Numbered from the stretch's first letter, positions 2,880-41,700 are shown. The stretch is 64,000 nucleotides of DNA from Guillardia theta CCMP2712 (GCF_000315625.1 NW_005434671.1:476078-540077); one strand, 5' to 3'. The notes: generated from the sequence alone by a model not told the origin. Program-made: numbers and translations.

Positions 2880-3961
2880 TCAGACAACCTCGACGGGAAT
2901 CCCCTTGGCAGCGAATTTCTCATAGTTGTTGGAAACAGCCTCCCAGTTCACAACACTCCACCAGTTGGTAATGTACTCGGGTCTGCGGTTCTGTTCACCA
3001 TGTCAATTCGATCGAACGTCCAAACAAAATCAACGGACCTGATACTTGAGGTAGTAGGCTGCGTCCCAAAGCGGAACAACAAATGCAAACAAGCAGCGAT
3101 CAGCAATGTAACAGAACATGGAAGCATCAGTTACCATGCTCCCAGACATCCAGGCCAAGGACAGGGATCATCTTCTGACCCTCGCATCCTTCCATGAGAG
3201 GATTGTCTTGGTTGGGAGTGGAGGTGATAGCAAGTTTTCCCTCAGGGGTAACACCTACACATTTTTAGCCACTTCCCGATGCTGCAATCTCGAGACTACC
3301 AAGCCATGCCCATCCAGAGCCGAAGCGCTTGGCAGCCGCAGCATTGAACTCCTCCTTCATCTTGTCCATTGAGCCGAAGGATGCATCGATGGCCTTCTGC
3401 AGAGCTGCGGAAGGCTTCCCAGAGTTAGCAGCCGGTCCCATCTCCTTGAAGAAGAGGGCGTGGTTGTAGTATCCGCCGCCGTTGTTGCGGATGGCTGGAC
3501 CCGCCTTGATGGCTTCTTTCTGGATATCAGTGAGCTTGGCGGCAGGCTTTCCTTCAAGCGCCTTGTTGAGGTTCGTGAGGTAAGCGTTGAAGTGCTTGTC
3601 ATGATGCAACTTCATTGTCTCTTCATCGATGTAAGGCTCCAACGACTTGTAGTCGTAAGGAAGGGCAGGAAGGCTGAAGGCTCCCTCGGCCTTTGACTCC
3701 TTGGGAGCAAGGAACGATCCTGCAAGAAAGATAGACAGTCACTCTGCATGCGCACAAACTCACTTTGTCCCTCTCGCACTAACCGAGGAGTCCAGCGGTG
3801 ACGACGACGGCGGCCCTTCTGCTCATGGGGTTGTCGTTGGAGCTCATAGTCACTGACTCTTGGCGGAGACGAAGTGACTTGGGAGCTGAGAGGGAGGGAG
3901 CGAAGGCTGAGAACGCCTCAGCCCCTCCCGCGGCGAGCAGCGACAGCATGGCGATCCTCAT
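2880..3961 (-). CDS. sodA: Mn-type superoxide dismutase with a signal peptide + transit peptide + twin-arginine presequence (~5 exons)
   Basis: Spliced product contains [46 protein letters not shown] and LDVWEHAYY. The GGG and NQD residues are Mn-type signatures. Stop TGA at 2882-2880. Confidence 0.93.
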
Positions 3962-4358
3962 AGCGCCTACTTATATGTTTCCTTCCGGCGCGGGCCTGGT
4001 CTTTTACGCCGTCTGACACCCGGCCGGCCGTGGCGCCGGGCCGGGGCCCCAGCACTCAGAGAGAGAAACGTTGAGGTGGAGGGAAAAGGTGGGGTAGGGT
4101 CATCTACTTTAGATGACCCTACCGGTCATTACACCAGTGGGTTGGGAGGAAGATAGTAGGGTAGTCTTTTCCATGACGGGTAGTATGGTATTATACCGGA
4201 TATTTGACCTAGATTGTAGGGGTGGTCTGAGAACTTTTGGGGTGGTGAAAGATCGGAGAGTTTTAAATAGGGTAGGGTATTCGGATTCGTAAATGTAACA
4301 TGGGGGTGGGGTAGTACAATTCTATCGGGCTGTCGTGATGTGCGCGCCAGCGGCGAAG

Positions 4359-4460
4359 ATGGCGGACCTGAACAGATTGATCGAGAACGGAAGGAAGAGG
4401 TGAGTTGAAGAGAAGCACGATGATGAAGATGGAAGGATGCAGAGCAGGGAGTTGAAGAGC

Positions 4461-4492
<32 letters not shown>

Positions 4493-5222
4493 CGACCAGG
4501 CGGCCATTCCAGGGAGAACAAGTTTTCATGTTTTGGATGAACAGAGTTTTGCAGGAAAGGTTGTGAGAAGGAGAATAAGGAGAAAGTCGAATGTGATTGA
4601 AAAACGAAGAAGAAATAAATGAGTTTTAGTTGAGATGAGCAGATGATGTCACATAGATATCGGGCGCCTGTGATGAGGAAGATTTTACCGGATTTGAGGA
4701 AACTTTGAGGAAGCTCGGGTGCGATGTCTCTGATGGCTCGTCCAATCAGTGATGTCAAAAGAAAGAAATGATGTTAGAGAGGAAATAGAGGGAGCAATCA
4801 GATTCGGCTTCATGTAGGGGGACAGGGTTTAGATTCCGCTGTACCCGATTCCATTCACATTACCCTTTAACTAAAACTCGCCCTAAGATGGAAGGGCGAA
4901 GCGACCGTGACCGTCTTTGATGAGCTTGCCTTGCAGCGATCTCATTGTTCTCGAGTTCGGAAACTACATGAGTTGAGGGCAGTGGAGGTACAACACGGGA
5001 AGGATAGACACTCTGATCAAGAAGCTGCTCGAGGCAGAGTTCGCTATCCAGCTGCGCTTCGTGGATGAGCTGAGCGCCCGAGACTCCGTCAGACTGTTGA
5101 CGCCCGACGGCAAGGAGATTGCATACCACCCGGACCTGCAGAACTTCAGGAACGCGCTCGCCCTGAGGGAGAACACGGACAACCTGGTTATGGCAGCCAG
5201 GAAGGCGTACGGCAAGGTCTAG
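4359..5222 (+). CDS. Candidate selenoprotein, UPF0728/C10orf53-like, 108 aa, Sec at residue 27 (TGA 4974-4976)
   Basis: Exon 1 is 4359-4399 (donor AG|GTGAGT) and exon 2 is 4937-5222 (acceptor TTGCAG). The spliced frame reads MADLNRLIENGRKSDLIVLEFGNYMSUGQWRYNTGRIDTLIKKLLEAEFAIQLRFVDELSARDSVRLLTPDGKEIAYHPDLQNFRNALALRENTDNLVMAARKAYGKV*. A SECIS lies in the 3' UTR. Confidence 0.8.
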
Positions 5223-5245
5223 TTGCAAGAGCACGATTGTTCCTC

Positions 5246-5316
5246 GCTCGCTGATCGAATGACGTGAAGAGTCCAAACCTGCATTGCAGGAGGCTTCTCG
5301 CCGAGTACGCCTGAGC
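5246..5316 (+). promoter_or_regulatory. Eukaryotic type II SECIS element
   Basis: ATGAC at 5259-5263, an 11-nt helix II arm GTGAAGAGTCC, AAA at 5275-5277, mini-stem CCTGC/GCAGG, complementary arm AGGCTTCTCGC, and CGAG at 5302-5305. Helix I is GCTCG/TGAGC. Confidence 0.8.
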
Positions 5317-5765
5317 TTCTGATCACATCGAGGGCTCTTCCCCGTGAGCGGCCTTGATGACGGTATCCGCCTGTCTACAGACAAGGCAGTGGGCTGAGGA
5401 AACAAGTTTTACAACTTTCCAACAATGTTCTCGTAACTCATCAGTAGTATAAACTTCAACAGAACTACACCACTTTCCTATCATTCCACATGTGCGACAC
5501 CATATGATTCCTCTCTTGTTCACAGTGGAGATGTTGGCCGGGCTATGAAGGCTTCCACGGTCGGGCCTCGGACGGTCCCGGAGTACCGTACATGATACGC
5601 CGACGGTAGCTTCGGTCTGTAAGTGACCGTACGGCGGATCGGACGGCCCGGCCCGAACTTCGGAACCAGATCGGCAACCGAGTCGGATCGGACCCGGTGA
5701 CCGGGTCGGCGGGTCGGACGCGATCGGACAGACGAGTCGGACTCGCCTCAGGACTGGTCGGCACT

Positions 5766-38790: not shown

Positions 38791-41700
38791 AGGCGAGTCA
38801 CGAGTCATAGCGTTGTCGGGTCAAGGAACTTGCTGACAATTGGGATTTGTACCAGATCCAGGCGTTTTCCAGTACAAAATTGTGTGTGAGTAAAAAATCC
38901 AAGGATTGGAAGGTTTGAAAATCCATTTCCAGCGCTGCAAGTTCAACGGCAACCGGGGGTAATTGAGAGCTTAGATAAGTAAACAGTTGTTCCTATTGCC
39001 TTTGCATAGGATCACTTAGGCCCTTGTATAGTGGAGTAATGATTTGTACCAGAACCTGATGGGTAGGCGTGGTAGTATTTCAAATGATTCGAACCCAACG
39101 GACGCGACAGGGGGGTGGGGGGTACAGGTCTTGCTCTGGTACTGTAATGGGTACCTTTTAAAATACATTTAGCAGAGGGTGTCTCCCTCCCCATCTCCCT
39201 GCCCTCCGCACTTGCGCATCCCTATCCTTCCCTGTCCATGAGTCTCAGACTCTCGTCAGACCTTCCCTGATGACCCTCAACTTTCTTTGACGCTTCTGTC
39301 TGCCTTGTCCTTCCTCAACTTGCTGGAAATTCAAACTCTGAAACCATGCCCATGAGTTGACAAGCACTGAGTTTCTCAGTTTGAATGCGGGAGGAAAGAT
39401 GATTCATGGAATGTAACTCAGGTGTGCATATTTCAAGCTGATGGATACGAGTTGTATAGCACTGGCAAATGACTGTCATTTTACTTCTCAATGATACAGC
39501 ATCAAGAACTTGCTCTCGATCCATCAGTACTTGCAAAGGGTCATTTTTCAGACAGAACTTCGAGTTCATCTTTATTTTGCGTTGATCCACACGATGACAT
39601 CTGTTTGATACACTATGTTTGATGAATAGTAAGAAAGAAAGGCTGAACTGTGCACCGCTTGACTGAATTTTCTACAATACTCTTCAATTGTGTAAGAGAG
39701 CATGTCACATGTAATCATACCAGGCAAACAAGTCACAGTATCGCTCCAAACCGCGTTGTGCTTGAAACTGAGACTCTACATGAAGATGTTATCGGACTAG
39801 TCGAATGATGTACAACTTTATGGTGATACGTGGTTTAGAACTGTTGCAAAGCGGACATGGGAATATGTAGCGGCCTAGGTGATGTTTTCAACGTACTTCA
39901 ATAAAACAAAGCCAAGTTGTTGCTAACAACATCATCATTTCTCCATGAGCCTGCATGACCTGATGTACATGTTAGAGAAGTCGATGCTCATTCATCAAAA
40001 GAGTGGTTAGACAAGAAATTGGTAGATACTTCTGCGCAGCATTCTTGTGTATGTGGAATCGTGCACACTCACCGTCGTGTGGAAGTGTTTGCACATTCTT
40101 CTGCGCAAGTCTCATACATTGTCCTTATCATCTGGAATGGTTGACTTTCGCTGCAAGTAATATGAGCAGCGCAAAGTTGGCAAACTTATCCATATGGTTG
40201 GAATGCCGGCGATGTATTGCAGGCTGCATAGCACCTGAGCGCTTTGTTCCACTTATCGCTTGGTTCCAAACAATTGATGATATCGCAGCATGCAACTCGC
40301 ATTGGCCCAAGGATGTCAAGCGAGGAAAAGATCAGGATGATGGAAGGGCGAGAATGCAGCGAATAAGAAAAGCTGGTCAGGCTCAGTTTACTTTGTGTAA
40401 GAAAATGCCAATGCTTTGTACATGTGAGGTTACAAAGAAAGAGGCAAGAAAGCTCTGGTATGAGAAGAAAGATTTATTCAAAAGGGTATGTCCATTTTTG
40501 TCTGCATGATTCAATCGGATCCAACATCAATTACCTGCTCCTGATACCATGTCAGTCTAGTCAAAACAAAGATATCAGCACCTTGAAAATTTCTTGCTTC
40601 GACTCGAGGTGAAGGAAATGAAATATGATTTACAATGCTATAAAGGGTATCGTTTTGTCGCTCAAAAGCGTCTTGATTGTAAGTCATCAAATGGAACACG
40701 ACATGCAATCAATTTGCAAGTCATGCCTTCATGTGGTACCTCATCACTGCCATTTGATGAATGCACTGGTATTCCTTGCAACTCTTTACATGCCTTGGCA
40801 ATACTCTTGCATATTGCTCAGACCGCCCTCAAGCCCGACTCTTTGCAGCAGATTCCTATGAAATAAGTATAGATCATGCTGTCTCCGTGACATGCTTCAT
40901 GACTTCCTACTAATTGCTCATGTCAATGTCATCCATCGTACAGCGCCACTAGCGGACGGTCCGTGCGGAGTACTCCTTATTCAAGCTGCTAAAATCTATG
41001 ATGATCAACCCTCTTTACATGTGTTTGCAATCACAGAGATGTTTTCAGACTGCTGCGCTCACACCAGATTCTGCAGGGATTGCCTCTGCTTGTCCTCGTC
41101 TGAGCTCTCCTGCTGCAGATGAGTCACGTCTGCGTAACATTCACTTGCTAACCTTGGATATGCAACCAGGGAAGGGAAGGGGTAAGGCTTGAGAGCTCCC
41201 TCTGATCTACAAGGGTGGTCTATGTTGGTTGGAGGCAGGGTAGGGTCCAAAACTTGACCCCATCGAAGAAGACACTTTCACTGGGAAACAGGTGGGTCCA
41301 ATGCAACATAGTTTGAACAGGGGAGGTACCGCATAAACTATTTTGGTACAAGTTTTCCTAACAGTACCCGAATATGTACCATAACATTGGTACTGTTGGT
41401 ACAATTATTTGCTACCAGAAAGTACCCTACCCCCTTAAACAGGTCCCAACAAATTTGAATCAGCTCCCAGCCGTCTGACCCACCCCAGACCCCAACTGCC
41501 ATTTGCTATTCACATATGTGGAAGGATACCCCCACAGAAAACTATTGGAAACCAGAGGGGTCAGTTGAGAGCGACAACGCTCAGCCGCTATGAGTCCGCA
41601 GGGGCCACGCCGGCACCGCCGACCGGGACTCCGGAAAGCCTGAAGGGGTGTCGGACGGTCGGAAGTGGTCAACCGTGCCGTGGGCTACACAAACGGAGGC

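Follow-up and report, generated by a model that had tools for sequence, protein, structure and literature searches.

Results

A two-exon gene interrupted by an in-frame UGA codon

The window analyzed here is a stretch of 64,000 nucleotides (nt) from Guillardia theta CCMP2712 (GCF_000315625.1, NW_005434671.1:476078-540077), in which positions are counted from the first letter. On its plus strand lies a two-exon nuclear gene with the coding sequence 4338-4399 + 4937-5222. Its reading frame contains one in-frame TGA triplet at 4974-4976, codon 34 of the 115-codon model, and its stop codon is followed by a hairpin with the anatomy of a type II selenocysteine insertion sequence (SECIS) element at 5251-5312. 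The sequence evidence presented below supports decoding of this UGA as selenocysteine (Sec), and it likewise supports placing the protein in a Sec-containing protist branch of the UPF0728/C10orf53 superfamily.

The coding part of exon 1 (4338-4399) comprises MCAPAAKMADLNRLIENGRK plus 2 nt. It is followed by a phase 2 intron of 537 nt with GT..AG ends (4400-4936), which holds a (GGGTGA)n repeat at 4463-4490, and the coding part of exon 2 (4937-5222) ends with the stop codon TAG at 5220-5222. As read from the sequence, the donor AG/GTGAGT cuts after 4399 and the acceptor TTGCAG ends just before 4937, leaving the split codon AG/C. On translation, the TGA was found within ..VLEFGNYMS-TGA-GQWRYNTGRI.. 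and was followed by 81 sense codons up to the TAG. A previous sequence-only reading of this DNA had proposed the same two exons and splice sites, the in-frame TGA, and the open frame to the TAG at 5220. Every splice coordinate checked out, the junction was recovered in a transcript contig (see below), and both the TGA and the open frame were in place on translation.

The start codon, by comparison, had to be moved. The sequence-only reading began translation at ATG 4359, which gives 108 codons and is the second in-frame ATG of exon 1. We placed the start at ATG 4338 instead, because a paralogue elsewhere in the Guillardia genome opens MCAPASKLADLNKLI, with Leu at the place of the second Met. 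Judging by this comparison, ATG 4338 is probably the start, and the product would have 115 codons and a mass of ~13 kDa. Read from this ATG, the window gene gives MCAPAAKMADLNRLI. Its MCAPA.. opening is kept in the paralogue, while the N-terminal Cys and the x-L-N-x-L motif of exon 1 are kept both in the paralogue and in distant homologues.

Transcripts retain the TGA

We compared four RNA runs (X1, X2, X11, and X20) with the 1,501 letters from 4150 to 5650. A contig of run X1, with a depth of 36, joins 4397 to 4935 and skips 537 nt with GT..AG ends; shifting the cut by +2 puts the junction at 4399/4937. The intron-containing contig of the same run had a depth of only 6. Contigs of three runs cross the TGA at 4974-4976 without any difference. 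Thus, the 4399/4937 junction that the sequence-only reading had predicted is present in the X1 contig, and the TGA is unchanged in all contigs. The most 5′ contig begins at 4324, and contig 3′ ends were found at 5418, 5454, and 5467. The raw reads of run X20 are 3′-biased, with a depth that ceases by ~5475, and are too thin at the junction to confirm splicing alone. Contig ends and raw read depth together give an approximate transcript span of 4324-5467 on the plus strand. Since the contigs end at 5418-5467, the SECIS element is located inside the 3′ untranslated region (3′UTR).

A separate observation concerns the order of segments in a 134-nt contig of run X1. This contig starts with 30 identical letters from 4998-5027, continues with 4324-4397, and is then spliced to 4935-4964. 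The backward join from 4998-5027 to 4324 has a depth of ~36 and no splice-site dinucleotides on either side. It could be an assembly-graph artefact, a product of template switching, or a head-to-tail molecule.

The locus is represented in public annotation. The 81 residues after the TGA are 99% identical to the hypothetical protein GUITHDRAFT_132153 of G. theta CCMP2712. In this Joint Genome Institute (JGI) model of 118 amino acids, exon 1 is the same, a different middle exon is used, and the coding sequence resumes at WRYNTG, with the TGA spliced out. The expectation of the sequence-only reading that annotation would miss the gene was therefore only half right: the locus does have a model, one whose splicing bypasses the TGA in a manner unsupported by the RNA contigs. 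The two-exon Sec reading corrects this public model. Fourteen selenoproteins were previously reported for G. theta (PMC7539508). Other SECIS-dependent selenoprotein genes of this alga have the same combination of an in-frame UGA and a 3′UTR type II SECIS with AUGA/AAA/GA, and, as for the gene described here, their models were truncated or re-spliced by standard annotation.

Conservation of the UGA codon

An exhaustive HMMER search together with a profile search yielded ~30 short homologues, nearly all of them open reading frames (ORFs) from metagenomes or transcriptomes, one from Cryptomonas paramaecium. The homologues match the 81 residues after the TGA with E-values from ~1e-9 in single-sequence searches to 1e-31 with the family profile. 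Most of the homologue ORFs begin just past the Sec column, which is what a TGA ending the upstream part of the called ORF would produce. Wherever DNA covers the codon, an in-frame TGA was found at this column (Y-x-x-U-G): in the Guillardia paralogue (L023) and in some nine further homologues from protists or metagenomes (L001/L002, L003, L005, L013, L014/15/17, L018, L025, and L026/27). In L004, the Sec codon is split by an intron (x/GA).

Several protein sequences seemed to carry another residue at the Sec column, and these candidates were rejected. The string 'FAGSW' in P0004 and P0011 is an artefact of reading through an intron acceptor located directly after TGA-G. In P0010, 'GGQW' is due to an acceptor that leaves x/GA, and the contig of this sequence has the best Rfam SECIS (34.1 bits). 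The 'W' of P0025 is not a real Trp, as its DNA codon is TGA. The sole apparently true non-Sec homologues were P0003 (Arg) and P0008 (Gly), both represented by protein sequences only.

These two sequences belong to a sub-branch, together with P0018 (JGI metagenome 3300059473 and others), with Arg or Gly at the Sec column, each one base from UGA. Members of this sub-branch have a long C-terminal extension rich in Gly, Ser, and Asp with the conserved ending ..LLRAYYSSKY, and L025 and L026 are their close Sec-containing relatives.

The Guillardia paralogue (L023, G000:C64:473291-473530) was found by a genome search and is 61% identical to the window gene. Its exons lie at 959-1020 and 1461-1746 of the locus, its TGA at ~1498-1500, and its SECIS at 1798-1860, 60 nt past its stop codon. 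Each of the two genes is 115 codons long with its TGA at codon 34, and the codon position of the intron is shared. Upstream of the UGA, the proportions of nonsynonymous (pN) and synonymous (pS) differences between them are 0.20 and 0.67; downstream, they are 0.21 and 0.77. The pN/pS ratio of ~0.28 on either side of the UGA indicates that purifying selection is comparable upstream and downstream of this codon. The synonymous sites are near saturation, and the duplication is therefore old.

The genome also encodes a tRNA-Sec (RF01852), on contig C65, with a score of 72.9 bits at a cut-off of 47. The claim of the sequence-only reading that this is a selenoprotein gene is upheld by the conservation of UGA and SECIS, the similar pN/pS on both sides of the UGA, the tRNA-Sec, and transcripts that retain the TGA.

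A SECIS element in the 3′UTR

The hairpin at 5251-5312 (plus strand) is located 285 nt downstream of the UGA. It contains AUGA at 5259-5262, AAA at 5275-5277, and GA at 5303-5304. Helix II is formed by 5264-5273 pairing with 5292-5301 (10 base pairs, one of them an A.C mismatch), and the mini-stem by 5278-5282 pairing with 5286-5290 (5 base pairs, with a loop of 3 nt); C-AAA at 5274-5277 is unpaired. The minimum-free-energy fold of 68 nt is SECIS-shaped, and its stability is ordinary (z -0.4). The Rfam model SECIS_1 places a hairpin at 5249-5315, at 22.3 bits (E 0.29, 2 kb) vs. a threshold of 35 bits. Hence, the label of a textbook type II SECIS, given to the hairpin by the sequence-only reading, is justified by its anatomy (AUGA, AAA, mini-stem, and GA) but not by its Rfam score.

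Six orthologous 3′UTR hairpins could be aligned, with invariant AUGA, AA, and GA. When all six were fitted to one structure, 86% of the alignment cells were paired, a fraction that is inflated because the hairpins had been picked by a scan that requires pairing. Twelve of the 15 pairs were changed on both sides. As controls, none of 500 shuffles was as good as the real alignment (0/500), and slid alignments paired only 37-48%. A covariance model built from the hairpins (R1) has a sole match in the 64-kb window, which is 5251-5312, with 62.7 bits. Matches of R1 outside its training set are unaffected by the way the hairpins were picked. They comprise the SECIS of the Guillardia paralogue (41.4 bits), those of L025 and L026 (15.6-17.4 bits) and of L027, and a weak match in L013 (12.9 bits). 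The SECIS of orthologue L004 scored 34.1 bits with Rfam SECIS_1, for which the cut-off is 35. Homologue L018 has the TGA, and no convincing SECIS was found in it by R1 or Rfam. Overall, a SECIS accompanies the UGA in nearly every homologue with 3′UTR sequence. The conservation of a TGA and a SECIS in other sequences, which the sequence-only reading had suggested as a check, extends to the paralogue and about nine distinct homologues from other organisms.

Relationship to UPF0728/C10orf53

The sequence-only reading assigned the protein to UPF0728/C10orf53 (PF15092). This relationship is supported via homologues rather than directly: the C-terminal 81 residues of the Guillardia protein have no Pfam match, and the evidence for the link comes from an orthologue, from the comparison of two profiles, and from a modeled fold. 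Orthologue P0025 passes the gathering score of PF15092, with 29.6 vs. 27 bits. Three other homologues with the N-terminus included (P0003, P0008, and P0010) score 12-15 bits against UPF0728, below threshold and in register. The best sequence match of P0025 in PDB by phmmer is 9d2f_V, 'UPF0728 protein C10orf53 homolog' (E 0.006). An hhalign comparison of the Sec family with 10 non-primate vertebrate UPF0728 sequences gave a probability of 92.4% and an E-value of 5.1e-7 over 62 columns. Primate UPF0728 sequences were excluded from all alignments.

The two groups share a length class (about 90-115 amino acids), the order of secondary-structure elements, and a set of collinear motifs, [VI]-x-L-x-[YF]-G-x-Y-x-x-[U/C]-G .. 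T-x-R-[IL]-x-x-L .. V-x-L .. D-L-[QE]. They differ in that the protist branch uses Sec, that it has an N-terminal extension (~20 residues) in which a Cys close to the start and an x-L-N-x-L motif are conserved, and that its H-P-D-[LM]-Q-H-N-[RK]-N-Y replaces the vertebrate block D-L-E-F-G-G-D-G-K-L-D-P.

When both groups are aligned together, Cys stands at the Sec column in the reptiles Anolis and Candoia (Y-R-S-C-G) and in the frog Pyxicephalus (Y-M-N-C). The aligned mammals, mouse included, have Val, and a newt has neither Sec nor Cys. The pairing of Sec with Cys proposed by the sequence-only reading is therefore seen at Y-x-x-C in Anolis, Candoia, and Pyxicephalus, alongside Val in the aligned mammals and Arg or Gly in the two protist sequences mentioned above.

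A predicted thioredoxin-like fold without a CxxU motif

We modeled residues 21-119 of P0025 with AlphaFold2 (predicted local distance difference test score 88.9, predicted template modeling score 0.82). The predicted order of elements is beta1, a beta-hairpin, alpha1, beta2-4, and alpha2; the tip of this hairpin carries the Sec-Gly pair. The first rank in a Foldseek search was 9d2f_V, with a probability of 1.00 and template modeling (TM) scores of 0.56/0.60. In a VIA-align comparison with this chain, Z was 9.0 and the root-mean-square deviation 2.9 Å over 87 of 92 residues; no other chain had Z >= 8. The next matches were SelW (2npb) and bacterial SelW-related proteins (2obk, 2p0g, 2fa8, and 3dex), with Z of 6.3-6.9 over their full lengths, a Z of 6-7 being the range of common arrangements.

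According to the model, the fold is thioredoxin-like and nearest to the Rdx type, without a CxxU motif or a match to the Rdx hidden Markov model. The model resembles proteins of the Rdx family (SelW, SelT, SelH, and SelV; PF10262) in its small thioredoxin-like arrangement beta1-alpha1-beta2-beta3-beta4-alpha2, and in both cases Sec, followed by Gly and an aromatic residue, is placed between beta1 and alpha1. In contrast to Rdx proteins, the position at -3 is Tyr, and the Sec is predicted to sit on the tip of an extra beta-hairpin, ~7 residues ahead of alpha1. No CxxC or CxxU follows beta1; the sequence there reads Y-M-[SN]-U-G, and position -3 lacks a Cys. Among the members scanned with Pfam, none had an Rdx (PF10262) match, even with E allowed to reach 10. 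A feature search of the ESM Atlas with P0025 gave no usable match, and an Atlas fold search gave generic thioredoxin-like folds only.

Discussion

Proposed function

A recent cryo-EM preprint assigns mouse C10orf53 to the distal stalk of radial spoke 3 in respiratory cilia (PDB 9d2f chain V), in contact with the MDH1B N-terminal domain, CFAP91, and AK9, within what its authors term a metabolic and regulatory hub (bioRxiv 10.1101/2025.05.19.654877). Guillardia encodes CFAP91 (156.6 bits) and is a flagellate, as is Cryptomonas, the other named source of a family member. With good confidence, we interpret the locus as a two-exon, Sec-form UPF0728 gene decoded with the help of its SECIS. We propose that the product may be a redox-active axonemal protein. 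The SECIS in the 3′UTR would direct the insertion of Sec at UGA 4974-4976. By analogy with the mouse protein, the Guillardia product may be part of the radial spoke 3 stalk of the flagellar axoneme, next to CFAP91 and the malate dehydrogenase module. Its selenol, exposed at this site, could then be redox-reactive or sense the redox state, for instance through a selenenylsulfide bond to a partner cysteine.

Within residues 2-4 of the protist proteins a Cys is conserved, and in many of them the last helix contains another; one or the other might serve as the resolving partner of the Sec. Nearly all N-termini of this branch (L005, L013, L014, L018, L025, L026, P0003, and the window gene at 4338-4346) read MC, MSC, MAC, or MSCC, followed by x-[LI]-N-x-L. 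The homologue with Gly at the Sec column, P0008, lacks the N-terminal Cys as well. This Cys may be a site of acylation or serve as the resolving residue.

Selenocysteine is used almost solely at redox-active sites. Given Sec in the protist branch and Cys in lower vertebrates, the hairpin tip is likely a reactive center. We further suggest, as a tentative idea only, that UPF0728/C10orf53 was ancestrally a selenoprotein of radial spoke 3, in which the Sec at the hairpin tip formed a redox switch tuning the flagellar beat. If true, a selenol switch would operate at the metabolic hub of the axoneme, with its malate dehydrogenase and adenylate kinases, and the series from Sec in protists through Cys in amphibians and reptiles to Val in mammals would record a stepwise loss.

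Weighing the alternatives

Besides the inflated pairing fraction and the low Rfam score of the hairpin, several observations weigh against a Sec-form UPF0728 protein of the axoneme. A Pfam scan with the C-terminal 81 residues of the Guillardia protein gave no UPF0728 match, for a query that excludes the N-terminal third, which carries most of the PF15092 signal. A six-frame search of the genome with PF15092 was empty as well, and is uninformative, since control genomes were equally empty. The similarity to C10orf53 is remote, about 20-27% identity, so the radial spoke 3 location of the mouse protein need not apply to the Guillardia one. Val at the Sec column of mammals implies that the protein can work without a redox residue at that position, and the two protist non-Sec homologues carry Arg and Gly rather than Cys, which is unusual for a catalytic Sec. 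Finally, runs X2 and X11 gave only intron-containing or internally started contigs: an X2 contig spans 4501-5418 at a depth of 63, with no spliced contig in that run, and the X11 contig begins at 4879.

The transcript data bear on where the protein starts. The X2 and X11 contigs would suit a main product made from internally started or intron-retaining transcripts, namely, a single-exon selenoprotein of 100 codons (MSLPCSDLIV..) starting at an in-frame ATG at 4920, inside the intron and preceded by an in-frame TGA at 4908-4910. We regard this as improbable, as the spliced form is ~6 times deeper than the intron-containing form in run X1, exon 1 and the place of the intron are shared by the paralogue, the Cys and x-L-N-x-L motif of exon 1 are kept in the paralogue and distant homologues, and the assembled contigs may stem from unspliced pre-mRNA. 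The same data leave hardly any chance that GUITHDRAFT_132153 is correct, i.e., that the gene has three exons and encodes no selenocysteine. That model is deposited in NCBI/UniProt, and it obtains an open frame via an extra exon at ~4430-4483 and an acceptor at ~4982. However, in X1, whose contigs alone reach positions before 4501, depth over the extra exon was 0 (4405-4455) and 0.73 (4456-4506), the contigs are unbroken across 4935-5027, and the junction seen is 4399/4937. Moreover, the model removes ..VLEFGNYMS-U-GQ, the most conserved block of the family. It is equally hard to believe that the UGA acts as an ordinary stop codon after a peptide of 33 residues, with the downstream conservation and the hairpin unrelated to decoding. 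UGA is normally a stop, and the Rfam score of the hairpin is under threshold; nevertheless, the 81 codons past the UGA are open, in phase, and under purifying selection, and the frame is open in at least 10 distinct sequences. The vertebrate relatives are each one continuous protein, with Cys at this column in lizard, snake, and frog, and the regular company of UGA and SECIS among the homologues also argues against a stop.

A selenoprotein of the UPF0728 fold might also function away from the axoneme, as a soluble cytosolic oxidoreductase resembling SelW and other Rdx proteins, the radial-spoke location in mouse being a later specialization. This is the chief functional alternative, and we rate it below the axonemal interpretation. 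The SelW and bacterial SelW-related neighbors match over full length (Z 6.3-6.9) at 14-20% identity, the Sec has the Rdx-type placement between beta1 and alpha1, and the protist N-terminal extension and DLQHNRNY motif are absent from vertebrate UPF0728. Yet the protein has Y-x-x-U instead of CxxU or CxxC and no Pfam Rdx match, its Z of 6-7 to these neighbors is in the range of common arrangements, and the clearly best match is a radial-spoke protein. Guillardia and Cryptomonas are, moreover, flagellate, and Guillardia has CFAP91.

Significance

UPF0728/C10orf53 is distributed from protists to humans, and we know of no biochemical function for it. The Sec form offers a first chemical clue to this family, with redox control at the radial spoke as a testable idea. 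The Guillardia selenoproteome gains two genes, the window gene and its paralogue on contig C64, and the catalogue of eukaryotic selenoproteins would gain a family. Our literature search retrieved no paper joining UPF0728 with 'selenoprotein' and none linking radial spokes to such a selenoprotein. In the papers searched, UPF0728 is not among the named selenoprotein families; it may be listed under the 'Hypo' or 'hypothetical protein 1-3' entries of algal lists.

Genomic surroundings

G-rich repeats of the GGGTAGGGTA type occur upstream of both paralogues, at 4270-4279 in the window and at 770-800 in L023. The exact 10-mer of this type was found 3 times in the window vs. 0.03 expected (4270-4279, and on the minus strand 829-838 and 41423-41432). 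The two genes may have a promoter element in common here, or the repeat may simply be frequent in Guillardia. Head-to-head with the gene, upstream of it on the minus strand, lies an ORF resembling Fe/Mn superoxide dismutase, with an N-terminal presequence (3265-3961).

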